Assembly (NCBI GenBank): GCA_964035545.1
Contig: OZ037770.1
Location: forward strand, 13,506,642 to 13,570,641
Length of the DNA stretch: 64,000 nt
From: Bugula neritina
Taxonomy: Eukaryota > Animalia > Bryozoa
Reading direction: 5' to 3'
Position numbers and translations under genes: made by a program. Of this stretch, positions 1-57,671 are shown piece after piece. Within the stretch, counting starts at the first letter, position 1; each line of letters starts with the position of its first letter. The notes below the pieces were generated by a model. It was not told where the DNA came from. It saw only the letters and a list, made by a program, of their open reading frames with translations, and made no database searches.

Positions 1-1852
1 TTTTGAATATATTTTATTATAAAATTGTTAGTAAAAAGATCATTTTTAAGTTGAATATCTAAAACTGATAAAAAAAACTGTTGTGATGTAATAAGTTTAA
101 TAAGTTTAATAAAAAATAAACAAAAACTATGTAATAAATAAATAAGGAAACAATAGCTTAACAATAGCTAAAATAGATAAACAAATAAACAAATAAATAC
201 AAGGAAAAATATATATAACACAAAGTGCTAAAATGTAAAGTACTATATATAATAAACTAAATGTGAAAAATAATCATTTTCCCTCAAGCAATTGTAAGCT
301 CAGAGATAGAAAATTTTCAAAAAAAAAATTCCCATTAAAATACATCGTTATATATTGAAGTGAAGTAATTTGTTAATTTGTTGCTCCCATTTAATATATT
401 GAACATGAAAATGTATGATTGTAAACAATTTTTTAGTTTACTGCTTTACTTTTTTCATTAATTATTTATAAGTAAATCTTTTAAATTAGTCCTGTCTTAA
501 GCTTTAAAGTGTAGCCAAAAAATTAAATTATATTAAAAAAAAATTGTGTTTTCACTGCCAAATGTTTTTAATTTATGCATTTATTTCTAATAAATCATCA
601 AAATAAAAAATCAGCAATGCTTTCATACAATTTGCTCTCAATTGCACAAGTCTTTTCACTAAATCAAGTTTTTTAGGCAAATATAGCAAAATAATTACAT
701 GTTTGTATTGCAAGAAATATTTTTCTCTACTTCTTTGTAGGACATAAATGTTACAGTTACAACTGTTTGGCCTAGCTCACTGTAACAAACTTTGAATGGT
801 AATGACTCTGCTCATTGACGTTAGGCCTTCGATATAAATTGATAATTACAGTTAAGATTCTCTAATATTAAGACATTATAAAGAAAGCATACTGAGGAGT
901 ACCTATATCAATACATGTAGATTGTAATTTTTGCGAGTTGTTAGCAGATATCAACTTGCTGAACAAACACTATCAAAATTGTTTAAGGTAAGTTATAAGC
1001 ATCAATTGTGATGTTTTTATACAGTTATTGAGAATAGTATACATTTATTTTGCAATTTGAAACAATTTATAACATGCTAGTAAAGCTATTGGTAAATATA
1101 ATTGGTCACTAGAGCAATTATTACGTATTGTATGTGGCAGGTAACATTGCAGCAGGTTATTGTCAGGCAGGCAGGCTTTTACTTTCAGAGAGGTAACTTT
1201 TTAGATGCTTTGTGATCAACTTATTGTGTACTCATACAAATAATCTAAACATATAAATAAACTAGACATAGCTGTAGCAGCAGAAAGAACTATTTTACAT
1301 AGCCAGCTATGATTTGCAAAGTCAACACATGTAATTAAGTTTATTAAACGTCTGCGTAGCTCTACATTGATATTATTTTTTGCCTAGTCATTGATTTTGC
1401 ATGTTGATTATGTTAAAAACTAATTCCCTAGCTATTATTAGAATATAATAATATGTTGTAGAATATTTATATCTTGGAGATTAATTACATGCTTAGAACG
1501 AGTACGTAAGGCCGTATAGGCAACCTGCAGTCTGCTGCCACGTGGAATATCTATCAAACTGACCTCTGGTTGTACGACTCACACCCTCTGATGTGTTTAT
1601 AAACTTTCAACAGAATATTTGCTAGTAAATGAAACTACTCTTCAACGCAATATACGGTTTTTCTGTACTAAAAGTCAATTTATATATCTAACTAACAAAG
1701 GAATTTTCTATAGATTTTTGTTTTATGTTCAAAAGTTGTGGTGTGGGAAAATTTAATCTTAATCATTTCCAGTCAATTTCTCAAAAAGTAGGTATTTGCT
1801 TTTGCATTTTTGTAATTCTAATATTTGGTTTAACTTCTGAAGATTATATATA

Positions 1853-1990
<138 letters not shown>

Positions 1991-2347
1991 ATGAAATTTT
2001 TAAAGTGGTTAGTTAAAACAAAGACGCAATGAAATGTTTCTTACACGCATCTAGGCTATAAAAGACTATTTTTTGTGGTATATGCAGTAATATTTTCAGG
2101 AAGCTTTTACAAATATTGGTTTACTTGAAAAAATATATGTATATATAAAGAATGATAACTACGTACTCAAACATAGTAATTATTGTACAATTATGTTAAT
2201 TATATGAATTCTCTAAAAAAAGTGATTAAAAATTGTAGCTATTATAGTTTCATAAGCATAATATTGCATGCTTGCTGTAGCTGACCAAAATACAGAAATT
2301 TTGCAAAACTATAGTTTCCCAAAGTTATCTTCTCTCTCATTTGATGA

Positions 2348-5300
2348 TCATTTGTCGTCTTTTAGTATTCTTTTGAGAGCATTCAATAGCTGGTCTTCTT
2401 TGTCTGGCTCACTGGTTGAACCTTCAATATTTATAAATATTAATAAATAAATAAAATAACAGCCCATTAAACACTAGCGTAATATTTTTGTAAAATATTG
2501 CATTACATTTTATTATGCTATATATCATATTATATTATATTATATTATAATATATTGTATTATACTATATTATATTATATTATATTATATTATAATATAT
2601 TATGTTATATTGTACTATATTATATTATATTATACTATATTATATTGTATTATACTATACTATATTATATTATATTATACTATATTATATTATATTATAT
2701 TATACTATATTATATTATATTATACTATACTATATTATATTATAATATAATATAAATGTTCAAATAATTACTTGGTTTGCTTGAGGTTACTTCAATATCT
2801 GTTGCCTCTGCTGCCTTAGCAAGAGTTGTTGAAATAGCTTTGGTAGACTCAGGACTTGGAGAAGGGGTGGTCGGCTCCTTCTCTGTAGTTGGTAAGGCTG
2901 TACTCTGTACTTCAGGAATCACAGGCTCACTTTTCACTTCTTCTGGTAATTCTAGCTCAAAACTGTACGCGGGGAGTTTTCCTTCTACTGTACTGTCCAA
3001 GAGCTGATTCATACCTTTCGCTTCCAAGATCTAGCAGAAGTAAAACTTTAAAGTTAGCACATTGGTTAGCATCGTCTAACATAACAACAACAATTTTTTC
3101 ATCAACTCGTCATGTGACTGATATATAGTCACAGTTCATTACTATTAGTAGCTGCGCTGAATTACAGCTTTAAAGTTTTAGTTTAGTTTAGTTATTTAAA
3201 AGTTATTTTGTATTCAAGCTTTCCGAAAAAATATTACTCATTGCATTTTTAATGTTTATACCAAATTGGAATATGAATAGCTATAATACTTCTTGTGCTC
3301 TTCATAGGCTGTAAAGTGCAGCTATAGGTGGTGTTGTATGCATTGATACAGTAGGCTATTATGTAATTTGTTTCCATGGGTTCAAATGCAATCATAAAGT
3401 CAAAACACCAAAAAGCTTGAGTGGTTCAAAGTTAGAAATTAAAAATGACACTTCATTAGTGTGGTGACTTTTGAAATTGCTTTTTATTGAAACTGTTAGA
3501 CCTCCATTTGAGAGTTTTAAGAATTCAACATACTGGACAGTTTAAATAGCAAAAATTAAGAACTACTATATTGAAAGCTGAAAATATTTAACCTCATCAT
3601 GAAAACCAAATCATTTCTGCTAAAAATTATGAAATATAAAAACCTGTGGTTTTGAGTTTACTTGAGAGTGACTGGCACATCAAACCTACTGCATGGTTAA
3701 ACCCAACAGCACATGAATCTTTATTCACTTGACTCGGCTCAAAAAGTGAATGTGTGATCAAATTTCTCTCAACACAATAAGAAGAAAGACTAGTGAATTG
3801 AATGAATGATAATCACAATGAATTCCAAAAAGCTGTAAGTAAAATGATAAGTAAAATCTATTCATTTTGTGCATAGATCGTACAATTAATTTGTTTAAGA
3901 AGCACCTAGCAAAATGATACTTATCATGCACAACTCAACACATCTTAGTCTGAGGTCTAAAGAAAGACTTTAGGCTGGGCTTACAATGAGAACCTTCGAT
4001 AGGTTCAAAGAAAGTTTTCTAAGAATTATTGTTGCACTTGAAAATTGTTTCGCAGATGTAGAGATGAATACTGCAGTGTGATCATTTAGCAGGTAAATAT
4101 GATATCAGTATTACCTGCTGCTGAGACTATAAGCCAACCTGCCAAGTGGACATAATTCTTCAATTCTTGTAAATGAATCAATTGAATTTGTTTATTATTG
4201 AATGATTATAAATTATATTAGTTTCAAAGCATGTATTTCAAAACATTTGGAACCCTGAAAACAATATGAAAGGCAGAGAACACTTTAGGTTTTCTATTTA
4301 GACATATTTGAAAATATTTCTGTTTTATAAAGCAACACTGTTTAAGGTAGAAAAGATATATAAAATAGTTCAAAAATTTGCCGAGACCTATTTAAAAAGT
4401 AGTCAGTTCTGTATGCAAACTGTCCCATGAAAACTCACAGAACTGCTACTTTTGTATGATAGTTAAGGTGATGATTGCAATTCCTAACACTTCCCTTGGG
4501 GTAGCTTAGTACAACTTCCAGAAATGTTACACTGAACACCACATTATAGTTTGGTTTTGCTCTGTCTAACTCATACAATTTTATTCTATATAGTTACCTA
4601 AATATATTTTTGTAAAAAATATATCTTATCATATTAATCCAAAAATTTGTAACTTGTTTTAAGTCTATATTTAGAAAGTTTCTTAACATTGTTATACAGT
4701 AAAGTCTTAGACAGGCATTCTAATTTCAAGCCAGCATAAATGTAATGGCTGCTGTTTTATGATAGCAATTGAAATTCTGCAAAAAAATACGGGCAGTTGC
4801 TGAGTCCAACTAAAATCAACCAACTTAATGAGAGCAGAGTTTAATCTATTTTGATTTTGATAAATTTATTTTAATATATTATTGGCATTAATGTTTGATT
4901 TTAATATTTTGACTCTTTATGAAAAGAATGAATCATTTTTGGTTTTGTACTGCCAGATACTATTTTTAGAAAACAACATTATGACTCACTCTAGTAAGAA
5001 ATGGCGGCATCAGATCTCTTATATTCAGCGCCATTTTGATTCGAGGCCCAAATCCAACAGTCTGCGTCTTTTCTTGCTCCTGCAGAATAAACAATAAACC
5101 CTGAAACCCTCACTGAAACTGAAAGTTTACTCTTTGTCACATTGCTTCTTTTGCATGCCAGCATTACTCATCATATGTTATCAACTGCATGCAAATCACT
5201 GATCACATATTCAATGTGCAAGTAGTATCAGTGTGCAGTATCAGTAAGCATTGTAGTAAAATTGGTGTAAATTATAAAACTATACTATTGTGAACATTAA

Positions 5301-5932
5301 AATATAGCCAGTAGTCAAAGTTTACAGCAAATGGTGGATGTATACTAAAAAGAGAATACTAATTTTAGTGCTTATAATTATGCCAGGAAAAACAGTAAAA
5401 TACTCCCTTGTTTTAATAAACTTCTTGTAATTGGGGTTCTGAAATTTCAGTTATTTTAGAACAAATTAAATTGCAAAAAGATAAAGATTATTGGGTTAAC
5501 TGTCAGCTCAAATTTTTTTAATTTCACATATGCTATTAAATGCAATGGGCTGTTGTGGTAAAAAAGGTGTAATAGTTAACTTACAGACATTTCAAAAAAA
5601 TGGTATAGGGCTCGTGCTACCCTTTAACTTTGACTACTAAACAATAGAGTGTATCATTATTATAATATGTTGTATTATAAATAATAATAATGCAACTTTA
5701 ATAAAGTTGAAAACAGGTTTAAATAATATATAAACACTTAATGCTTATACTTACTAATGTACATGTACATATGCAGTATACACTTACCTAATAATATACA
5801 AATGTAGTAGGCCTATATACTTACATAACTTAAGGTACATATGTAGTATATACTTACAGATATTGAAGCAGTAGATATCAAATTTATTGATACTAAAACA
5901 AGTAACACTTGGAAAGATTGCCGAGCAGCCAT
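2348..5932 (-). CDS. Uncharacterised secreted protein with Thr/Pro/Ser/Glu-rich linker, paralog A (~165 aa, 4 exons)
   Basis: Exons 5932-5858 (MAARQSFQVLLVLVSINLISTASIS, signal-peptide-like), 5079-4990 (EQEKTQTVGFGPRIKMALNIRDLMPPFLTR), 3030-2772 (ILEAKGMNQLLDSTVEGKLPAYSFELE...PSPSPEST...), 2421-2348 (SSTSEPDKEDQLLNALKRILKDDK*). All introns are GT-AG, phases 0/0/1 join in frame, and the gene is homologous exon by exon to the one at 7112-9406. Confidence 0.85.
2500..2752. repeat. (TATAT)n pentanucleotide repeat
   Basis: Read directly; lies in intron 3 of paralog A. Confidence 0.9.
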
Positions 5933-7111
5933 TATAGAGAGATGTGTGAACTGTACACTCTTAGCCTGTGTGGGAGCAGTGATTAAAACTATTAGGGTCG
6001 GGTCATTATAATTATATATTATATCTTCTTAAGATGCAGTCATGCTTTCAAATTCTTTTGTACATCATTGAATGCGATGTTTTGTCTGACAGACTCGCTA
6101 TCATATTATCTCAAGCATTCCTTGCCTTTTCATTCCATTATTGTTTAGAGAATAAAACTTATCAGTCTGTTTGAATAATAAAAAACATGTTCGTTTTGTT
6201 GGCAATGTGAATGCCTATTTCAGATGAGATAAACGAATTTTGTGTGAGGTTTTCTAAATTAGAAATCTTGTATATTGGACAGCCTATTTCTTATGGATAC
6301 TGAATGGTCACAACTAAGGTGTGGGATCACGCGTACAGCCTCAAGTTGAAGTATAGAAATATGGTAATTAGCCATATAAAGTGTCAAGCAATATTTGAGC
6401 TGCTAAAAATATCACAGTAGGAAGATATACATCCCTTGTATTACTGTATTACTATATGACTATATTGCTATATTACTTATATATTGTTACATTGCTATGT
6501 GACTGTATAACTGCATTCCTGTATGGCTGTATTACTATATATTACTGCAATGCTATATTACTGTATTGCTATATTAATATTGCAATATTGCTGTTATATT
6601 TCCATCTAGATAACTGTACCTAGTCGTGTTGTGTGCCATTTCACTGCACCATTAGTTAAGAGGCTTTGAGCGAGTGTTACCACTAGCAGCTAATACAACT
6701 TTACTGAGTGCTCAAATATAAATATGGTGCTACGAACGGTAACCATGGTAACGGTATATTACACTTTCATTTTATAATTAAATGAGTGTATGATTATTAG
6801 TAACTTTAGAGTTTAGTTCAACCCTATGTAATATAGTTGAGAATTATCAAACATAAGTTTGTGTAATAGATGTTGATGGTTTATATAATTTCTTATAAAG
6901 TATATATTCAATAAAAAATAATATACAAAAAATTAATGTTGTTTATACATATATCTTCTCATAATTTGTGAGGAATGTAAAACTGGCATTCGTTTTAATA
7001 AAGATCAGTGGACTAATGCCTACAGATACTTCATTCTTATCAATATGACACTAAATTAGCTATTCAGTCACGGACGACTAATCATGAGTCTACCGTACAC
7101 TACAAGGCTCT

Positions 7112-9406
7112 TTACTTGTCCCCATCCAGTATTCGTTTCAAAGCATCTAGAATTTTATCCTTGTCCTGGCCAGAAGCGGCTGGCTCCACAGCTAAAACAA
7201 TGATAATTCAACTTCAGCACTTGTAGTTAAAATGTTGGATCTGGACTAAAATATATATACTTGGTGCATCTAAATCAAATATATGAGATGAACTATCACA
7301 GGTATGCTGAAGCTCTGACAGGTTTGGCAGAGATGTGAAAAAATATTAACTGGTTTGAACTAGTAAAGTTTTGGCCAGAATTATAGCTATTTTTGCTATC
7401 ATATAACCTTAAAGACTGCGCTAAATCAAAATAATGAATTTATAGATATGACAATTTGAGCAGATTGGTAATCATGTTTCTATACAAATAAAGTACATTA
7501 ATAACATAATTTTGTTGTAAACCATCAGTGTCTGATACAAATGATTGTTTTTGTAGCTTAAATCACAAATCTGATTTGATTTTGTGTTTTGAACTATTAT
7601 TTTGATTTGCTCTTACTTTTTGAAAAGAGCTTCCTGTAAGTAAAAGAATCACTCTGATTTGCTCTAGCAACTAAAAAGTATCACCAGACTGAAATCTAAC
7701 CTTGCGTTGTGGTATCTTCTGCAGCAGCGGTTGTAGCAGCTGCTGTTGTAGGTGGTGGTTCAGTTGTGGTGGTAGTGGTAGTTGTAGATTTTTCTGTGGT
7801 GGTGGTAGTTGTGGGTTTCGCTGTAGTTGTTGTGGGAGTAGTAGTTGTTGTTGGTTTCTCTGTTGTGGTGGTGGTTGTGGTGGTGGTTGTGGTGGTAGAT
7901 GGTGCTTTTGTAGTTGTAGTTGGTGGTGGAGAAGCTGTAGTAGAGGGGGGTGAGGCTTGGGTTGATGCAGTAGTTTTAGAGTGTGAGGCTCCTTCCTTCT
8001 TTTTCTTAGACAGTCTCTCTTGTATCTTGAAGGTCATAGCTGGGAATCCCCCGTGAACTGTCCCTTCTAGAAGACTCTCCATGCCTTCTGCTTTTAATAT
8101 CTGTGGAAACGCCATGTAGACCAGATTAGAATATATACAAAGTGTACCAGAATCTACACCTTGAATAATCATAGGAATATTAGCTTATCTTTAAATTGTA
8201 GTCCAGCAAAACATCCCGTCATAGAACTGGTAAAAATGGCACACTGCAGTGCTAAATTTTCCCAAACCTCAAACCCAAACTCTCACCCTCAGATTCAAAC
8301 CCCAAACTCAAACCTCAACCCCTATTCAAAATCCCTAACCCCAATATTGAAAATGTGCCACTTTTACCTACTTTGCCATTTGTGTCATTTTTACCTGTGC
8401 TATTTTTACCTGTGCCATTTTTACTGAATACCATGACAACTACCTTGATGCCATACATGTAACTATCATCAACTTCATATAATAAACATTTAGCAATTAA
8501 CTTAGATGACCTACTCTAGCTAGAAAGGGTGGAACCAAGTCTTTGATATCTAGATCCATTCTCATCAAGCCTTCCACCTCCTCAGCCTTGCTCTAGGAAA
8601 GAAAAGAATTACAGGCTTGAATTTTACAACATTATAATATTATATGTAAAAATTTGTGCTAATTATCGGTGTCCTGTACTATTCAACCCCTAAGGCCTAT
8701 AGACTGTTGGTTTATGTCTATAAGTGGTAAACAAACAACAATGGCCATCAATTCAGTATACAATCTAGGTGTAAATAGCATTGGCTCATCATCCATTAGC
8801 AAAAATTTTATTGAAATTACAGCTAATTAAAAAATATCAGCAGCACCTTTGAAATTAGATTTCACTAATAAACTCTAAACTAGAACTTCAACTAAAAGCA
8901 AAAGTACTACGACTATACTTAAAACAACCCTTAGAAGGTGAAGAATACTGAATAGTGTCAAGTTTTATGACCTATAATTTAATAAATGATTCTTATATGC
9001 TATGGTAATTATCAAAAGGATATCTGATTGATATAGCTAGGTTATTAAGCTGGTTTCAGAATAACAGCAAGATCAAATTCAAACTCAAATAGCTAAACTA
9101 CAATAGCACTACTAGTTTCATAGTAGTCAAATTCATAATGACAGCCATTAAACTTTACCTAATAGCATAGAATTTATTAAAGCTTCAGTGCAGAAAAAGT
9201 ACCTAATTATTTACAATAAAATATACTCAAATACTCCTATATGCAATCAAACCAAGGTTACAAATAGCTATACTCTTATTCTTATAAAAATATATCTATA
9301 TAGAAAAGTCTTTATACAATATAGTAATCTATAGAAGATGCTGCATTCTTACCACAGAGCAGAAGATGCACAGAGAGATAATAGAAAGCCCTATGATTGA
9401 CCTCAT
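7112..9406 (-). CDS. Uncharacterised secreted mucin-like protein with Thr-rich linker, paralog B (~203 aa, 4 exons)
   Basis: Exons 9406-9353 (MRSIIGLSIISLCIFCSV), 8592-8515 (SKAEEVEGLMRMDLDIKDLVPPFLAR), 8100-7701 (ILKAEGMESLLEGTVHGGFPAMTFKIQE...poly-T/P), 7191-7112 (AVEPAASGQDKDKILDALKRILDGDK*). GT-AG introns with the same phases 0/0/1 as paralog A. Confidence 0.85.
8225..8432 (-). mobile_element. Small MITE-like foldback repeat, copy 3 (reverse orientation)
   Basis: GGTAAAAATGGCACAC...(AAACCC-rich core)...AATATTGAAAATGTGCCACTTTTACCTACTTTGCCATTTGTG...TACCA. Confidence 0.7.
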
Positions 9407-33000: not shown

Positions 33001-36000
33001 TATGTTTATGCTTAAAAATAAAGAAATAAGGTTGAAGAACCAATGATTAAAAGTTTAAAATTGTTAAATTAACTTGCAGCTAGTGTTTTCAGTGTTATTA
33101 TAAATTGGAGATTGTAATCACCAACCTTATAATGTTTCTCATTATCAAGAAGAACGCATCTTTGGCAGATGTGCAGAAGTTCTTTCCGTAAATGGCAATC
33201 TATAACAGAAAGTGAATTATTATTGTGTGGCAGCGTTTCGTGTGAACATGAGATTCTATCCAGCTTATAGAAGAAGCACTAGCATTTCTTCTAACCTTTA
33301 CTTGAAATCAATAATTTGAACGAGTCGTATTTCTGAACAAATGTAACAGCAGTAGGATCTTATTATTCTAAAAGTTCAATAGCGAGAATATTCTTACATC
33401 TATAGCCTACATCGTTTTCAATCAATCAGAGAAAGCAATTAATGAGATTTAGTACCACTATAAGGCATTAAACAAGTCATCATATTTATTACTTTTAACC
33501 TCTGTAACAATAGTCAGTGAGTCTTAATAGATACTCAACTTCTGGAGGTAAAATACTTGGCATCCGCGGGTAAAATAAGTTCAGCATACAATAAGTTCAG
33601 CATACGCAGGTAAAATAACTAGTATCTGCAGGCAAAACACTCAGCCTCTGCAGGTAAAACATTCAACTTCTGCAGGTAAAATACTTAACACCAACAGGTA
33701 AAAAAGCCATTATTTGCAGGTAAAATATTCAGTGCCCGCAGGTAAAATACGCTGCATCTGTAGGTAAGCAAGCTTGGAACTTACCAAAATGTAGGCATTC
33801 TTGTTGATCATCTTCATGAACTTCTCTAGACAGTAGAAACAACACTTGAGACATTTGAGGAAGAACTTAGCCACTGCGTTCTCTGAGCCTTTGAGTTTAG
33901 CGTCTAGATACTCTAAGCCGACACGAATCATCTGTATGATTGCTATAATCAGGGCGCCAAAGGCTATGGAGCCAGTGTGGTAGCTGTAACAGATCATGGG
34001 TGAATGTTTATTTGCCAATAGTTTAGTTATTTTCAAAATAGCATTGAATTTAAACATGTGAGCTTTTAAAGCTACAAAGCACAAACTTCTATTGCAACTA
34101 TATAACTGTTTCTAGCGCATACTAGGTTTGTGCTAGTCAAATAAAGTATTTAATACATCTTCAAATTTATTACATTATATTCATTAATATATCTATTTAA
34201 TTTTATTACATAATAAGTTTTTGTATATCAAAGATACTTTTTTCTTCGAATTTATTGCATTATATATATCCATATAATAACAAATATCTATTTAATTTCT
34301 ACACTTTACAGTCAAGAGTCATAGCATAAAATTTGCAGCCATTACTTAAAAAGTCAGACTTAAAACTAGCATTTCTGTTTTAAATAATTAACACCAAAGA
34401 TATTAAAACCAAAATACTCAAATATAGCCTTTGGTACATACAAAAGTGTTCGGCCGACAGATTTAATAATGGGGAACATGGGCATGTGCTCCTTCTTGTC
34501 AAACGCCCAGTAGTAAGAAGCGAAGGCTCCGGCCAACACCATTTGACCAAATCCTATTATCCAGTTCATCGTCCAGAAGAACATGAATAGCATGTAGAAC
34601 TGGAACACAAGGACAATGATGTTTTAAGTTATGTTATAGAACTCAAGCCAATGTCCCAAGTCTCCATACAAAACTTAGGTAGAATGATGTCTCAAGTCAC
34701 CATACAGAACTCAAGTCGCGTTATAGAACTCAAGCCAATGTCTCAAGTCCTTATGCAGAAAATAGTAAGAATGAACCCATCATAGCAAAAGGATTTTTAT
34801 AAAATGATTAATTTTCACACTCACAGTGATCCAATCACAAAGCGATAAATTTATCTAAAATAAGCTTTAATCACATGACATTTTTCTATTCTACTACCTA
34901 TGCCCTACGACATGTAATCCGCAAGATATTGCTTGTTGTCTATAAAAAAGTCAAATATAGATCATATAATGTACTTTCTGTAGAGCTTAGGATGACGTAA
35001 TAAAATAAACGCAAATTTAAGATATATTCTGTATTCTATAACACAAAATATATGATTCCTAGTCTGAAGTTCATACACCTGAACTTACCTGTAGGTAGAT
35101 TGTATACTTGAGCACGTCATTCTTTACAAAGTTACAAACCTCACCGGCTGCGGTTTGGTTATTTGGGTCACATGGAATGAGATCTACCGGGTTCGACTGC
35201 ACATAAGAGCAAGGAGTTTAATTTATTTATCCATTATTCATTATCCATTATTCATTATCCATTATTCATTATTCATTATCCATTGTTTATGATTATAAAG
35301 GTATTTCAGTTTAAACTTAAATAAGACTGCAGTAGCAAGCTCTTCTTTTAAAAGGCATTAAAAAATTTTCAATTTAGAAAACAAATTTATTTACATGTTG
35401 TAGCTATAAAAAATAAAATCCTAAATACCAGTTACAACAATTGGTTTCAAAAATAAATTAATTTAATTAGTCAGAACCAAATTTAAAACTTCAATAAATT
35501 TAACAAGAATATTATTACTTTATTTCACAGCTCACAGCAAAAACTCTTGCTTTTAAGCACAATCTTTTTTTCAAAATCAATAATAGCACTATTAACAAAG
35601 AAATTTTATAACTGCAACTCAATATGACTAGTAAACTTACAGTAGTTGTGCTCGTAGCTTGGTAATCGTAGCTATCATTTGCTATTGCAGTTAAATTGGT
35701 AACACCGTACACCTGTTTGGTGGTGGAGGCAAGATAAAGGCATGTGGCACCCCAGTAGGCCACCAGGGATAACTCCAGTATAAACGGCCAAATTGGCCAT
35801 AGTAATGTGAACATCATCATTCCAATTGCCCTAAAAAGCACGCCGTTGATGTCTTTAAAACATTCTATTGCATATGGTAAATTATAAAAGCAAGTTTATT
35901 ACAAACTTTTAGCCAAAAAGTTGATTTAGCTATAAAGGTGATAATTCATTATTTCATTAACTTTTTATAATTATTAGCTAGTAATATATAACACTGAGAA

Positions 36001-39000
36001 GTGAGATGTCTATATTACATTACTCAAAGAGTGCAAAGTTTCAGCTACTCAAAAACAAAAACTTCAAAATATGCATAAATAATTAATTAATCACAATTCC
36101 TATTTATCAATTCTAAACAATTGACCAAACGGTTGCCTTTTTGAGGGACAATAAGTAAAGATTATGCATGCCGTATAAGTTTTGGATCAATACCATTGCA
36201 GTGAGCTATAAAAGTTACAAATAATTGCCTGATTAAGTTAAACTAACTGAAACTAAAACTATTACTTCAGAAAACTTATAAACGCAGTTTAGCTACACAC
36301 ATTGTCTGATCTACAACAACTCCAATAATAACTACAACTATTTACCTGCTGCCTTCCTTCACCAAGGCTATAGCAATCATGATACGAGATCTGAGAAATA
36401 AGATGATAAGCAGAAGGATGATGAATATCGTTGCAGACGTACAACCGAAAGCCAGCCACACCTCCTTCACAGTCAGATAGTAGTTGAAATCAGTGGTAAG
36501 GATCCAGCTGTTAGTGTTATTTACATCTTTTTTTAGGTCATAGTACGTCCAGTAGGAGTATCCTGATGCTAGAGTACAGGAAAAGTAGCTACTAACAATG
36601 GTGTCCGGCAGCAATGGTAGAGGCAGCAATGGCGCAAATGGAAAAGTAGGTAAAAATAGCACACTTTCAATATTAGGGTTCTGAGTAGGGTTTAGGTTTA
36701 AGGGTTGAGGGTTTGAGTTTGGGTTTTAGGAAAATTCAACATCGGTGTGCCATTTTTTTCTACTTTTCCATCTGTGTCATTATTTCTTAAAATTACTAAT
36801 AATGATTAGGCCTTAGTGCAAATCACTTGGTATAGGTAATATATATATTATTAATGAAATAATAGCCAAGCAATGTAGCATGACATGTTGAACATTGTTC
36901 TAAGACTTGAAGTTTCATAGTTTTGATTCATACAGAGATGCAGCAGCTTACAGATAGAATTTTGAAGTACTAGTACATGTTGTGTCTCATTATAGACCGA
37001 GAGTTTAACATTATTGATCTATAGAAGTAGGGTTGGGTACAGATACACACATTCTATCATATGAGAAACTACTTACCAAATCCAAATATAGCAAAGAAGA
37101 GAGCGATAGTGACCCACACGATAATACCTGCTAGCCACCTCATTAGGACTATCCACAGGAAACAAACTATCATTGATAGCCCCAAACCACTACAACATGT
37201 AAACGCAACTACAACTATACATTCTGTTATTGTTAGAGTAGTACTATTAATCTATAATATTAATAAAAACCTATCAATTCTAAATGATTTTTAAAAATAA
37301 TGCACAATGTGCATAAAACTCAAAATTTAAGGATATTCAAAAGGGTTTTACTACTTTCTATTAGTATTAGACCCATACAGTTTACGCCAGCTGAACAGAG
37401 GGTTTACATTGGGTCTATGAATTAAGTTATAAGTGTGGGGTTATCTTTCCTTACCGTTGGTACCCGATGATTGATAATGTAACTAAAAAGAATACTTATA
37501 GTTGAATTCATTGTAATTTAACAGATAACAATTAAACTTACAATAAAATAAACCATTTAGAATTTTCAACATCCGAGAAAACTTTTTCTCCGTAACTTCG
37601 AAATTGCAATAGCTTTGTGACGAATCTGAAAACAGGAAAAGGAGATTTAGTGATAAGTTCTGAAAAAAAGTGGAGATTGAGAGTTTGCTGAAAAGCATAT
37701 AATAAACTATTTATAGTTTACAGTTTCTCCAAATTTTGATACAGTTGCTTAGTTCAACTCAGGGAAATTAGGTAGTGAGTGCACTGACATACTTCCCACT
37801 TGCTATTATTAATAAATTATTCAAGCATATTAAAATCTATTCTACAAGCAAAAATTCTTACTAATATAAAACAAATAGATGCAAAAAATATATCCAAACT
37901 ATCGAATACACTTTAAAGGGGTATGCGTCATGAATAAATATATGCACTTTAAATATATGCACAAAAATACTGCACTATAAATGCATGCACTATAAATACT
38001 ATATTATAAATACCGTAGCATAAATACTGTACTATAAATGTTGTAGTACAGGTATCGTACTTATATAAAGACTATATATACTTGCCATCAATAATAAAGA
38101 CTCTATATATTTGCTATCAATAATAAAGACTATATTATATACTCACTGTACATGTAGAATGCTATAAATAGTAAAGACTATACATATACTTACGCAGAAC
38201 CATCTAGAATGCTATCAATTGTAACTGTTTTGTTCTGGGAGTCAACAATATCAGATGTGCTGTTGTCACTACCAACTTTCTCAGCCAGGGATTGGGCCGT
38301 GTCAATACCCTCCGTTATAATAGCAGGCAAGCATCTGCCCAGCACTACCAAACATAAAACCAACGAACTTATCAAAGTAGGCAGTATTTTTGAAGTCATC
38401 TTTTTAAATGTTTTGTTTTTTCACTTGGAAAACTGAAAATAATATCTACAAGAGTGTAAATCACAATTGATAAAATCTCCCTAGCAGACATTTAATTGAT
38501 ATGTTTTATTAGACATTTAATTGCATGAAGCCATTAAAAGTTAATATAATGAAGGCAAAGAAAACACAAACTGCAACTTTTTTAACTTAAAAAAGCACTT
38601 CAAGTTGACATATAACAATAAATAAAGTGAATCCTAATACTAAAAATATTACCTTCTTTCTGTGGGTAGTAATAACCAGCACAAAGGTCATCATCAATGA
38701 GCTCTTTTAGCTTTGCTGATGAGGCATATGCATTGTCTAATGGGTTGATACCTGTCATAAGAAGTACGGATCATTGTATATTTGTGCTAGAAAGAAAATT
38801 GTGTCATTTATTATAAAAAATTTGTATCATTTCAAAGTTTCCATCCTGGTGATAAGCCCTGATATTCTAAGAGAGAGGTAATAATTGTGTATGCTGTGGT
38901 ACAGAAACAACTATGGTGTTCTCCCGGCATTATCAATGGTTTTACTGAACTCATGACCTATTGTACACCGGTCTTTAACCTCTAAACCATGGATGCCCCT

Positions 39001-47328: not shown

Positions 47329-49819
47329 ATGGCGGCTGTCAAGGTAAGTCCTGTTGTTAGGGTTATGTAAGGACAATCATTTTAAAATAATCATAACTAC
47401 CTTATTACCTAATAAACCGCAACAAGTCATTTAAACTGCTGCATGATCTTTTAAGAAATACTCTAAAATCCTTATGACTGATAATATTGGCTTCTGTGCG
47501 CGCTGTTCAAAGTCCAATTAATAATCATAATGTCTTTCTAACCGGCAACGCCTACCTTTTTAGTTTTCATTTCATCTTAATCTTTGCCTTGCCCTTTGTT
47601 CTTTTTATTTGGCTTCAAGCTAATGTACTGACTTTGATATAATTTCAGTTGTTTTTATTTTAACTTTGCGAAACGTAATGTTATTTGAAACTGAGTTGCT
47701 ATATTCATGTTGATGTTTTAACTTCCAAGTTCCAACACTACAATAAGTATAACTATAAGTTAGTTGAATATCTTAGCCAAGTGATAATATATATTTTTAT
47801 GTTTATATAATAAATATATTTTTACTCGAGTTACTCCTGTCTAAGCTGATAGTGCTAAGCTATAAAGCTTCTAATCAGTTCACTGCTCACCCTAAGGCTA
47901 ATACTAATAGCATATTCAGTATTTGCTAAACTTTACTCTGTGCGAGTAAACCTGGGCACCAATAGTTTCAAATGAGGAAGTCAAAGTTTTGTACACTAAT
48001 GCAAAATGATATATTCCTCAATAGCCCATCTAATTCCTTGTCACCATGCTAACTCACCTACACATAATGTGCATTTTTAAATAGAATACCTGCAGGGAAA
48101 TTTACCTAAAACTAGTAAAATGTGACTCCTTGAATGAGACTAGTTGTCTAGACTCTAGAATATTATACATACCTAAATTGTTTTTATATGATTGTTTGAT
48201 CATTATATATCATTAAACAATATTATTTAAAATAAATATGTGACCATTTTATTATTTAGTATTATTGTTTATTTGTTTCATAGGTTCTTATTAAAATGTT
48301 TGTAGTATCGTGTATATGTTGGTTTGATCTAGGTATGCAGAGGGTTGCACAATTTTGTTAGATCGGCTACAGGGGGACAACTCCGTGCTCTCTCTTCCAC
48401 TGCTAGAAAACAATCTGGCTACAACTTTGGTATGTAATAATAAGACAGGTTTTGAATATTATATAATGACTTGGCCCATCAAACAGATACGGATTAATAC
48501 ACTTCTGTTGTAACATGTGTTGAAGAAAAATGGCTCTATAAGCAGCTTCGAGTTGGGATGAATGAGTGCAGTAGTTTGGGTTCTTGAGTTTTAAGATTCC
48601 TAAGCTACTGCTCTCATTCACTTCCAACTCGGAGCTGCTGATAGAACCATTCTTCAAGAAAAGGTAAAAGTGTATCCACTGTTTCTGTGTTCCCAGACAT
48701 AACACCTGAGCAACAGGAGTACCAGGAGCTTGCCAGGAAGTTCACAGCTGAGGAGATCATTCCAAGAGCAGCTCACCATGACACCACTGGGGAGGTAACT
48801 CCTTGTAGTTTACAATACAATAGTACAAGATTTGTCATTACTAGAATGATAGGCTTTATTATGAAGACCTGGTCAGTTGCTCATTCATATTGTACATTTT
48901 ATATGTAGATTGTGTTTATGAATTTACTTTTATTTCAAATCTTTCAGTCTATCCTTTAAAAGAGCAGTATGTCTTATATCTTGCTATTATAAAATGTTTG
49001 ATAAGCCTGTGTCCCGCATTCTTTAATGCCAGTTCTTTGCCTATTTTCAGTACCCCCGTGCCATCATAGAAAAGGCGTGGGAGCTGGGTCTAATCAACAC
49101 ACATATTCCTACAGAGTATGGCGGGCTGGGTCTTGGAGCTCTCGATAGCTGCATCGTCACTGAGCAGTTAGCCTATGGATGTACCGGTATTCAGGTGAAC
49201 TCAGCGTCATGCATTTGTGTCTGGTATAAGTTGTTCATTTTATTATATAATATACACCTTGAAGCTTGTCTCAGGAGTTGTCTTGTCTATAATTGCATTG
49301 TCTATAATGAAGAACAAAACTACTAAAATTCAGAAAATGACCGTAAGTTAAATTTGAACCAATAATTTTACCTGAGGATAAAGCTTTTCAGGACAGATAA
49401 AAAGTTTAGCTTTGAATAAAATATCGAAAGATATAAATAGAATGTTTCAATACACATCAACCTATAAATTTTATATCTATACTGTTTATTTTTATAATGC
49501 ATTCTGTGAATGTAATAGTGTTATTATATGAATGTTATATTGTTATACGGTATCTTATTCAGACAGCTATAGAGGCAAACTCTCTCGGGCAGATGCCAAT
49601 CATAGTGGCCGGTAATCATGAGCAGAAGGAGAAGTACCTGGGGAGGATGATAGAGTCTCCCCTACTGTGTGTGAGTAGTAGTGATAGTCATAGTAGTAGT
49701 ACTAGTAGTAGTAGTCGTAGTACTACTACTACTACTAGTAGTAGTAGTAGTAGCAGCAGTAGTAGTACTAGTAGTAGTAGCAGTAGTAGTAGCAGTAGTA
49801 GTACTAGTAGTAGTAGTAC

Positions 49820-49866
<47 letters not shown>

Positions 49867-50547
49867 ATAGTACTAGTAGTACTAGTAGTAGTAGTATTAA
49901 TACTACTAGCGGTAGTAGTGGCAGTGGTAGTAGTAGTAGTAGCAGCAGCAGCAGTAGTAGTACTATTAATGGTAATTAGTAAACAACTCTTATACTGCTG
50001 CAGGCATACGGAGTTACTGAACCAGGCTGTGGCTCAGATGTGGCTGGAATTCAGACTAAAGCCGTGAAGAAGGGAGACGAGTGGATATTAAACGGGCAGA
50101 AGGTAGGGTTTGGGGTTGTTAGTGTAGATATTCACTATACAGCAGTGAGCGTAGTCAGTAGTGCCTGTTCCAGTGTTGAAGTGGAGTAGAAAGGATGTGT
50201 ATTGCTCATATTTTATTTAATTTATACACTTGTCATCAATCATAGTTTGTAACTAAAATTTGCAAAATTGTTAAAAATAAACAGTTTTGAAACATGATTT
50301 CTTGCCATAGTAGTTTATCCTAGTCATACGTTACCAATTCACTACATATTTATTCTTTAGATGTGGATCACTAATGGTGGAGTCGCCAATTGGTATTTCG
50401 TCCTTGCCAGGACAGCCACTGATCCGAAGACACCCCCTGGCAAAGCATTCACAGGGTACCTACTGCAATTACTACCACTACTAGTACCACTACTACCATT
50501 ACTACCAGTACTACCATTACTACCAGTACTAATACTACTACTACTGT

Positions 50548-50591
<44 letters not shown>

Positions 50592-52916
50592 ATACTACTG
50601 CTGCCGCTGCTGCTACTGTTACTACTACTACAACTTCCAGTATAATATTTGCAGGTTTATAGTGGAAGCTGACTGGCCAGGAGTGACCAAGGGTCGGAAG
50701 GAGATAAACATGGGCCAGAGAGCTTCATCCACCACTGGCATTACATTTGAAGATGTCAGAGTGCCTGCAGAGGTATGGAGTCATACAAGCTCTGTGACAA
50801 GTAGTTGTTAGTATAAGATGAGCTTAGGCCGTGTATTTTGCTGTGTAATTTTAGTATAATCCGATATAGTGAAAGCCCGTCTCATAGATTCAGCTGGGAA
50901 AACTGTGGGAACTTTTGTACGACATTTAAACATAACCAGAAAACATAACAAATTAAATTGAATAAAAATAAATAGGCCTATGTGCTGTATATTCATCACA
51001 ATAACTCATTATATATTTTTCTGGTGTGGTAATGCAATGTCATCACAGGAATAGCGACTATATATAATGGTGCGGTGTTACAATGTACGTTTCTAATGAC
51101 ATAGCTTGTACTCCTAGAACATGCTAGCTGAAGAAGGAGCAGGTTTCAAGATTGCTATGGCAGCATTTGACAGGACTAGACCTCCAGTAGCTGCTAGCGC
51201 TGTCGGGTTGGCAACCAGAGCTTTGGATGAGGCAGTAAAGTACAGTCTGGAGAGGAAGACGTTTGGTACTGCTATATGCAACCACCAGGTTGGTGGTTAT
51301 TGATAGATTGCATTGGAATAAACTGCACTTCTGTGCTGCGGATAGAGAAGTATACAGTACTTGGCATTTCAAATTTAGTGAGACTCAGAAGTTGTCTTTC
51401 CATAAATAATCAAATTGGTAGTTAAAAGAGTCGTATTTATCTTGAGGAACTTTTCATTTAGCGTGTTCAGCTGTGACTGTTGACTGGGTCACTGTGACCG
51501 TTAGTTGACTCAATGTGACTGTTGGTAAGATCAATGTGACCTTTAGTCGAAAAGTTGGTTGATTCACTAGACATGCGATTGCGACCGTATCAATCTTATG
51601 AAGACTTGCTTTCAATTGTCAAGTCAAAGTCTTGTAAATAAATTTGTTCCAAAATTTTAACAGTTCTATTGCATAAGTTTCCATACCGTTTATGTAGTTA
51701 TTATTAGCAATCTTGGTAAAAAATATCTTCATTGCGCCCATTCAATCAACATCTCAAAGTCATACAATACGTTCTGGTAATCAGTCTTTCACTGGATGCA
51801 GGCCGTATCCTTCATGTTGGCTGACATGGCCATATCCGTGGAGACAGCCAAGCTCATTACCAGGAGGTCAGCCTGGGAGATAGACCAGGGTAGGAAGAAC
51901 ACTTACCTTGCCTCCATATCCAAAGCATACGCTGCCGACATCGCCAATAAGTGCGCCACTGACGCTGTCCAGGTATATTCTTGTGTTTAGCATAACTCCA
52001 GTCATACTCAGAGGTTACTAGCCAATAGGAACCACTTTGTCATGGACTGGACCAATCGTAACTGCTGTATCACTAACTTCAGTTGGGTTCATCTCATTGT
52101 AGGAATGTTTTCTGTTCAACTTGCAGTTTCTAGGAGTTTTCTTTCCATGTCCAACTGCAGTTACTTGCATTCAAAATGAATATTTTATTTCAGTTTCTCA
52201 AGTTGATGCAAAATGAATATTTTAAACTTGACAATGACTTTACAATGGCTGTAGTTTGGTACTAGTAGTTAACTTATGTTAGTAGTAGTTACACCAACTA
52301 AGTTATTATTTCAGTGGTGCAGTCGTTCAAATCTTTCTGCATAGCACAACGACATTTTGCAAACCCCAGTCTGTAAAATGTAGACTATCTGTTATTTCTG
52401 TATTTCCAATCATTTCCTTAGAATTATGTCATATTTTATGTTATTATTAAAAATTCAGATATTCGGTGGTGCGGGATTCAACTGTGAGTACCCAGTAGAG
52501 AAACTTATGAGAGATGCTAAAATATTCCAAGTAAGTTTCAAACTTTAAAATTATTCTGTTAGAAAAGAAAACTCCAATTTTGTTTTCAATAGCAATGTAG
52601 TAGTGTGCATAATCTTCAACTTATAGCCTGTTTTGTAGAAGCCAGTTACAGTTGATTAAGACATTATTCACCTTTTGTTTCACAAATATTAAATAGGAAG
52701 TTGCCATCTTGGTCATTCCTCTTTAATTTTACAGACTTAACGAGTCAGCTGTGTATAGTTCTGGTAATTATTATGTAGCTTTAGCTCTATAAATCTAGCA
52801 CATGTTTGACTCTATTCTATTTACAGATTTATGAGGGGACAGCCCAGGTGCAGAGGCTAATAATATCCCGCGACGTCATTACTAGGGCGGCATCGGGACA
52901 ACTTAACAACATCTGA
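47329..52916 (+). CDS. ACADM: Medium-chain specific acyl-CoA dehydrogenase, mitochondrial (~425 aa, 12 exons)
   Basis: Exons 47329-47343, 48333-48429, 48697-48794, 49051-49194, 49563-49670, 50004-50102, 50361-50455, 50655-50772, 51118-51288, 51802-51972, 52459-52530, 52827-52916 (1278 nt). Arg/Ser-rich presequence, [63 protein letters not shown] (catalytic Glu). Confidence 0.96.
49671..49962. repeat. (AGT)n array filling ACADM intron 5
   Basis: Starts at the donor (GTGAGTAGTAGT); source of the poly-Ser/poly-Val ORFs. Confidence 0.95.
50460..50632. repeat. (CTA)n array in ACADM intron 7
   Basis: Read directly; source of the poly-Leu ORF. Confidence 0.93.
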
Positions 52917-56800: not shown

Positions 56801-57671
56801 TAGCTGTAATACAGTCACTGTAGCTGTAATACAGTCACTGTAGTTGTAATACAGTCACTGTAGTTGTAATACAGTCGCATGGTTAGTCACGGTCTACTGT
56901 AGTGAATGAGAGGATGCAAGGTGTTTGTGTGTTTAGTGTAGCCAGTATTTACAGTGAATAATAAAGATAACAATATTCTTACCAAGAAGGAAATGTTTTT
57001 AACCTTACAGAGTACAGGCAGTAAAACACACTGATAATTAGGTAATATTACGTGGCCCTTAACCTTTGCAGATGTGTAATTATATTGCTGTATGCTATCA
57101 TGAAACTCTTATTACATAAGCAGTACTGTATCAAATAGCAACTGATACTGATGGAGATAGAAGAGCAGAATGAAAGCCAAAGAAATAAAAACTTGTTTTG
57201 AGTCAGTCAATGAAATAGTCCTAGATTCTACTGTACAATCTGGAGGGGCTTTTTATACTACTTCAAACTCAGCCAGTGGCAGATAAGCCAGAAACTCAGG
57301 CATTTTAAGATAGTTTTTCTATAGCAGTATAAGTATTGGAATGAAATAGTTATTTATCCCATTTCATTGAGAATAGTTGAGTTCCAACCCATCTCTGCGG
57401 GCATCAATACTCCCTCCCTTAGAAATAAGACATTAGACTGAGGCACTGAAGCTAATCTCCGAAAGTACGAAGGGGGCTGTTGCTCACCCTGCTGAAGGCT
57501 GACAACTTTGTCAGGATCACAGACTCTCAGGTTATAAGGTATCGGCTCTGTCCTGTTCCAGCACGCCGAGGGATTGTCCCGTAGACTGGGGTAGAACTGA
57601 GAGCTGATGGCACTCGACAGATTGGGGGCTAACAGTACCGTCACCAACAGCAGCATTATTCTATCGGCCAT
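53819..57671 (-). CDS. MOLO-1-like (modulator of levamisole receptor / TPM-domain) secreted protein (~218 aa, 5 coding exons)
   Basis: Exons 57671-57488 (signal peptide, then FYPSLRDNPSACWNR...RVCDPDKVVS), 56398-56260 (TACPCASDVC...GYTVTLALVKTM), 54834-54702 (YAQTLR...KCEEDILIFLS), 54111-53978 (VYVMTG...LTNDEI..I...GLGYII), 53885-53819 (stop). The YP..C...CDPD / CPC / C..DILIFLS pattern fits the MOLO1 family. A probable 5'UTR exon ends at ~58159. The last exon is the least certain. Confidence 0.7.
55670..55771. repeat. 14-bp minisatellite (GGTCTAGTACCACA)x7
   Basis: Read directly from the sequence. Confidence 0.92.
56744..56877. repeat. 20-bp minisatellite (TGTAATACAGTCACTGTAGC)x6-7
   Basis: Read directly from the sequence. 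Confidence 0.93.

Follow-up and report, generated by a model that had tools for sequence, protein, structure and literature searches.

Two tandem genes for small, probably secreted, mucin-like proteins with conserved ends in the bryozoan Bugula neritina

Near the start of a 64,000-nucleotide (nt) stretch of DNA from the bryozoan Bugula neritina (GenBank assembly GCA_964035545.1, contig OZ037770.1, positions 13,506,642 to 13,570,641 of the forward strand; the whole stretch is here called the window), the minus strand carries two genes in head-to-tail order. The first, g1, occupies positions 2348-5932 and has 165 codons; the second, g2, occupies positions 7112-9406 and has 203 codons. With the signal peptide included, the coding lengths are 498 nt (165 residues) and 612 nt (203 residues), respectively. 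A first-pass annotation, made from the sequence letters, had described two 4-exon genes with identical intron phases, and this description holds. The peptides that it quoted are all found on the minus strand where it had placed them, GT-AG borders are present in 6/6 introns, and the phases are 0, 0 and 1 in g1 and again in g2. Intron 1 is of nearly equal length in the two genes (778 nt in g1, 760 nt in g2), whereas intron 2 (1959 nt against 414 nt) and intron 3 (350 nt against 509 nt) are not. The exons are the following.

g1 exon 1: 5858..5932, minus strand; start codon and a 25-residue signal-peptide-like segment, phase-0 GTAAGT donor
g1 exon 2: 4990..5079, minus strand; 15 residues without conservation, followed by the first N-block half (15 residues, with a PPFL motif at the end)
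g1 exon 3: 2772..3030, minus strand; the second N-block half (about 27 residues), a 59-residue linker rich in Thr, Ser, Pro and Glu, phase-1 donor
g1 exon 4: 2348..2421, minus strand; a short acidic stretch, a predicted amphipathic C-terminal helix, stop codon
g2 exon 1: 9353..9406, minus strand; start codon and an 18-residue signal-peptide-like segment, phase-0 GTAAGA donor
g2 exon 2: 8515..8592, minus strand; an acidic, non-conserved stretch of 11 residues, followed by the first N-block half
g2 exon 3: 7701..8100, minus strand; second half of the N-block, a KKKK site, a 106-residue linker, phase-1 donor
g2 exon 4: 7112..7191, minus strand; a predicted amphipathic C-terminal helix, stop codon

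Exon 2 of g1 has phase 0 at both of its borders. In neither copy are frames, phases, or start or stop codons disrupted, and an ATTAAA signal is found at 6999, 112 nt downstream of g2 exon 4. In g1 the pyrimidine tract at the acceptor of exon 4 is weak. An alternative in-phase GTAAGT donor for g1 exon 1 occurs at 5825, 33 nt past the predicted one; if used, it would add 11 residues to the product, one of them a cysteine. The window as a whole is AT-rich (33% GC). Nearly all of g1 intron 3 is a (TATAT)n microsatellite (about 47 copies, window 2495-2754), and about 350 nt beyond the g1 stop codon a (TA)74 run occupies window 1845-1992.

The first exon of both genes has the composition of a signal peptide: the Met and a basic n-region are followed by a hydrophobic core of 13 residues, and small residues are found towards the end of the exon. 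For example, g1 exon 1 reaches a 9-residue Kyte-Doolittle maximum of 2.72 and has small residues at -3/-1. Upstream of each exon 2, the predicted exon 1 is the only hydrophobic in-phase candidate that runs from an ATG to a GT with a strong donor. When both strands of the entire window (128 kb) were scanned for first exons with a generic filter, the start codons of g1 and g2 were the only ones to come out. The filter asked for an ATG and 15-40 open codons that include a hydrophobic core and a basic n-region but no acidic residue, and for a GTRAG donor; its criteria were chosen after the exons had been seen and are in themselves ordinary for signal peptides. Each candidate is followed by its exon 2 at a distance of 778 nt (g1) or 760 nt (g2), with strand and phase correct. 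Judged from sequence, secretion of both products is well supported.

The first-pass annotation had drawn each protein as a signal peptide, a conserved block, a Thr/Pro/Ser-rich linker that cannot be aligned between the two, and a conserved terminal helix, with neither a cysteine nor a transmembrane (TM) segment in the mature chain. That drawing can be kept in all its parts, and the figures can now be attached to it. Directly behind the signal peptide are 15 (g1) or 11 (g2) mostly acidic residues that are not alignable between the paralogues. The N-block that follows has about 40-45 residues, and in g1 as in g2 it straddles the exon 2/3 junction. It begins at a conserved Met with a stretch of alternating hydrophobic and polar residues, continues through the PPFL motif at the exon junction into a moderately amphipathic stretch, and ends with a conserved T-V-x-G-x-x-P-A-x-x-F segment. 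Identity between g1 and g2 over this block is 10/15 in the first half and 13/24 in the second, or 23/39 residues. In single-pair BLASTP comparisons of g1 with g2, matches were obtained in exon 2 (10/17 identical, expectation value (E) 7e-8), at the start of exon 3 (13/27, E 4e-8) and at the end of exon 4 (10/16, E 6e-6). Since the three exon matches are colinear and have low E-values, the likeness of g1 and g2 is well beyond chance. Outside these three blocks no alignment of g1 with g2 is obtained, either as protein or as DNA, and when the DNA of the two loci was compared for common promoter or intron elements, only the exon 2 block emerged.

The linkers differ in length and in composition. 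That of g1 has 59 residues, many of them Glu, and at 46% Thr+Ser+Pro it is only moderately rich in Pro, Thr and Ser (PTS-rich). That of g2 has 106 residues, 51 of them Thr, with 68% Thr+Ser+Pro, and is made of imperfect 39-nt repeats (about 2.4 copies). The C-terminal 16 residues have a helical hydrophobic moment over 11 residues of 0.84 in g1 and 0.86 in g2, as expected for a strongly amphipathic helix. Cysteines are confined to the g2 signal peptide, and the mature chains, with exon 1 as modelled, are cysteine-free. No hydrophobic or TM segment is present after exon 1 in either chain, and neither mature chain has an N-glycosylation sequon. Basic sites consist of KKKK in g2 only and a KR within the C-terminal helix of both genes. 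A complex prediction in which the g1 exon 2 and exon 3 pieces were given as separate chains scored 0.01, a result that is uninformative.

An orthologue of part of g1 has been detected in metagenomic data. A word search with g1 exon 3 matched a single protein (P0009; 90 residues, 94% identical), which is encoded on short metagenome contigs of the Joint Genome Institute, L007 and L008 (samples 3300002729 and 3300003318). These align to window 3737-2555 at about 81% identity, and with an identity no higher than this they come from a related animal and not from the B. neritina genome itself. When compared with g1 as DNA, exon 3 is 92% identical and intron 2 is 74.5% identical. The acceptor AG and the donor GT of g1 exon 3 are both retained, and the protein likeness collapses directly past the predicted exon 3 donor. 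The two contigs end near g1 intron 3, probably because of the (TATAT)n microsatellite there. Further metagenome scans did not recover the other g1 exons or a g2 orthologue.

Substitutions between g1 and this orthologue are distributed unevenly along exon 3. In the 27 exon 3 codons of the N-block all 9 differences are synonymous (0 replacements; Fisher 9e-8), while over the 59 codons of the linker there are 5 synonymous and 6 replacement differences, with a ratio of replacement to synonymous rates (dN/dS) of 0.39. For exon 3 in its entirety dN/dS is 0.115. As judged from these substitutions, g1 exon 3 is confirmed as coding, with the N-block strongly constrained and the linker less so. In the conserved blocks of the paralogues, the proportion of differing sites is 0.27 for replacement sites (pN) and 0.84 for synonymous sites (pS), the latter being saturated. 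The duplication that produced g1 and g2 therefore appears to be old and the blocks constrained, since synonymous sites are saturated and replacement sites are not. The first-pass annotation had claimed purifying selection on the conserved ends and had named dN/dS between the paralogues as a check; the absence of replacement differences in the N-block and a pN well below the saturated pS both agree with it.

Synonymous divergence from L007 is also not uniform within exon 3. It is about 5-fold higher in the N-block (9/16.8 sites) than in the linker (5/44.7; Fisher p 0.001), and a patch of intron 2 (3095-3270) is not alignable to L007. These features may reflect a recombination or introgression boundary, or they may be small-number noise.

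The family appears to be small. The 216-Mb genome was searched with the exon 3 pieces of both genes and with a two-row profile, and at the DNA level with degenerate patterns for the exon 2 motif and the helix; two copies only were detected. For example, the degenerate pattern for the exon 2 motif plus donor occurs only at the g1 and g2 sites in 216 Mb. The pattern for the C-terminal helix had one additional match in the genome, and a reversed control pattern likewise had one.

Relatives in other organisms were sought exon by exon with queries of 15-30 conserved residues, the N-block being searched as two halves. The first-pass annotation could assign the proteins to no known family, and on this scale of query the result is the same. 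An hmmscan of all eight exon translations against Pfam-A gave a best E of 0.077 (14 bits, where the cut-off is 27), sequence searches of the PDB at E up to 10 gave 0 matches, and a look-up in a language-model atlas produced no neighbour of use. When the two-row profile of the exon 3 N-block was run with HMMER exhaustively against 1.84 billion representatives, only P0009 and repeat artefacts came back; the latter (P0010-P0020) are not relatives but long repetitive proteins whose scores are summed from many short stretches. Word-search matches to g2 exon 3 (P0001-P0008) were rejected as Thr-rich chance matches, and a word search with the open reading frame (ORF) around g1 exon 2 had no match. 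In metagenomes, a scan with the exon 3 N-block profile found no relative, and the degenerate exon 2 pattern occurred at 10 loci, all on GC-rich, non-animal contigs (GC 0.50-0.73). On the contigs L011 and L017 (GC 0.72-0.73, presumably bacterial) an ORF end of about 20 residues matches the exon 2/3 junction region, with the first nine residues forced by the pattern; what we take to be a resemblance to the end of a STAS domain was rejected as chance along with the match itself. The literature on Bugula mucins and on secreted, lineage-specific proteins of bryozoans yielded nothing on this family. As far as the data reach, g1 and g2 would constitute an undescribed, lineage-restricted family of two members.

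The division of the N-block by an intron bears on how these null results are read, since a known family could be missed if its diagnostic block was only ever searched as two short halves. In the library of 1.84 billion proteins an E of 0.001 needs about 35 bits, and a relative that is about 60% identical over 27 residues falls below that score. Pfam and the PDB, however, are small enough for short matches to appear at E up to 10, and none appeared; the language-model look-up, too, was without a usable neighbour. Membership in an already described family is considered unlikely.

Taken together, g1 and g2 are very probably a real pair of secreted orphan genes. For the explanation as a whole, we lean towards tandemly duplicated genes for small, secreted, cysteine-free, mucin-like proteins with two binding ends. 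In such a scheme the proteins would enter the secretory pathway, and the Thr/Ser/Pro linker is predicted to be heavily O-glycosylated, which would make it a stiff, hydrated and extended spacer. The two conserved ends would be putative non-covalent binding modules, either for each other or for a common partner or surface. Each protein could then serve as a small cross-linker in, or a coat component of, an extracellular layer (cuticle, mucus or an adhesive, for example), with association of helices taking the place of the disulfide-rich end domains found in other small mucins. This cross-linker or coat mechanism, taken by itself, is tentative and somewhat less probable than the explanation that contains it in outline. 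A more specific version is rather unlikely: the N-block, as a new small fold, and the C-terminal helix would be complementary docking modules, allowing head-to-tail polymerisation or cross-linking without covalent bonds and giving bryozoans a new means, specific to them, of making a network of mucus, cuticle or adhesive.

Several observations weigh against the preferred explanation. The protein collection holds no transcript-derived protein for g1 or g2, so that no junction is confirmed by RNA. The selection data based on the orthologue come from one exon (exon 3) of one gene (g1) only. AlphaFold2, given g1 exon 3 alone (half of the N-block, with no alignment), predicted no secondary structure, with a predicted local distance difference test (pLDDT) score of 61, although with so incomplete an input the result is uninformative. 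Paralogue conservation, moreover, starts exactly at the exon 2 Met, which has a good start context, and this leaves room for a shorter product that is not secreted.

Translation would in that case start at the conserved exon 2 Met, by way of an alternative start site or of a leader trans-spliced at the acceptor of exon 2, and the resulting protein would be disordered and located in the cytosol or nucleus. Ahead of this Met, the 15 residues of g1 and the 11 of g2 are unalignable, and both genes have an A at -3 and a G at +4 around it. However, the window holds no candidates of this sort besides the two signal-peptide-like exons, which match in distance, strand and phase. Between the exon 2 acceptor and the Met no stop codon interrupts the frame of either gene, and long Thr runs with Pro and Lys mark extracellular mucin domains. 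Initiation at exon 2 is improbable.

A second alternative retains secretion and changes the function. The first-pass annotation had suggested, as its own alternative, a precursor cleaved at the KR/KKKK sites. The proteins could then be prohormone or secretory-granule precursors that become active only after cleavage at basic sites, the conserved blocks being the released peptides. A signal peptide with an acidic spacer behind it, the lack of cysteines, a KR conserved in the C-terminal block and the KKKK of g2 are all in keeping with this. The position of these sites is not: the KR, which is the sole conserved basic pair, is in the middle of the conserved amphipathic segment rather than at its border, the N-block of g1 has no flanking basic sites, and KKKK is missing from g1. 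There is no Gly-basic amidation signal (no Gly-Lys-Arg), and 51 Thr residues are atypical of peptide precursors. The suggestion is therefore weak, and there is little chance that the proteins are precursors of this type. Decaying duplicates or mis-assembled exon models are very improbable, for although no RNA evidence was found and one acceptor (g1 exon 4) has a weak pyrimidine tract, reading frames, phases, and start and stop codons have stayed intact in both copies despite saturated synonymous divergence, and the N-block is under strong purifying selection relative to the orthologue.

Other features are found elsewhere in the window. Exons of an SLC44-type choline transporter-like gene are located at window 33710-36662 on the minus strand (Pfam Choline_transpo, E 1.3e-26). 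Acyl-CoA dehydrogenase exons at window 49497-50645 on the plus strand have a weak match to Pfam Acyl-CoA_dh_N; they read on into long trinucleotide-repeat tracts coding for Ser and Leu, which are presumably intronic. An ORF at 57354-57671 on the minus strand has a signal-peptide-like start and a weak match to MOLO1 (modulator of levamisole receptor; E 0.0018, under the curated cut-off).

The extracellular materials of B. neritina (cuticle, larval glue and mucus) are poorly known at the molecular level. If the preferred explanation is correct, the secretome of this fouling bryozoan, which produces bryostatins, would gain through g1 and g2 an undescribed protein family and, with it, two short conserved modules that are new. 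A mucin-like protein with conserved, cysteine-free ends would also be a compact model for the non-covalent assembly of glycoprotein coats. Orphan genes for secreted, low-complexity proteins are frequent in invertebrate genomes, and for this reason the pair is not a surprising find; it is a solid annotation that opens no long-standing question.

The proteins can be compared with three kinds of known system. Small secreted mucins with conserved ends include, e.g., the Drosophila salivary glue protein Sgs3 and the TES-120/MUC surface-coat mucins of Toxocara canis. In general features these resemble g1 and g2 in having a signal peptide, short conserved N- and C-terminal parts, tandem copies, and a repeat region, rich in Thr, Pro and Lys, whose length differs from paralogue to paralogue. 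Pfam and HMMER searches detected no sequence likeness of g1 or g2 to these mucins. The ends of Sgs3 and TES-120/MUC are built with cysteines (disulfide-rich or six-cysteine SXC domains), whereas the mature ends of g1 and g2 are cysteine-free, short and like amphipathic helices. Granin- and prohormone-type precursors are likewise secreted proteins with an acidic, disordered chain, in which a variable middle separates the conserved ends and a KR is conserved; in g1 and g2, in contrast, the KR is inside a helix, cleavage sites do not flank the N-block, and the centre is mucin-like. Gel-forming mucins are secreted and have a PTS-type central region, as g1 and g2 do, with O-glycosylation probable. 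They consist of thousands of residues with VWD-C8-TIL modules and a cystine-knot (CK) tail, while g1 and g2, at 165-203 residues, are without VWD, C8, TIL, CK or cysteines. What g1 and g2 do share with mucin-domain (PTS) secreted glycoproteins, a kind of protein rather than a homology family, is an N-terminal signal peptide followed by a long PTS-rich region.

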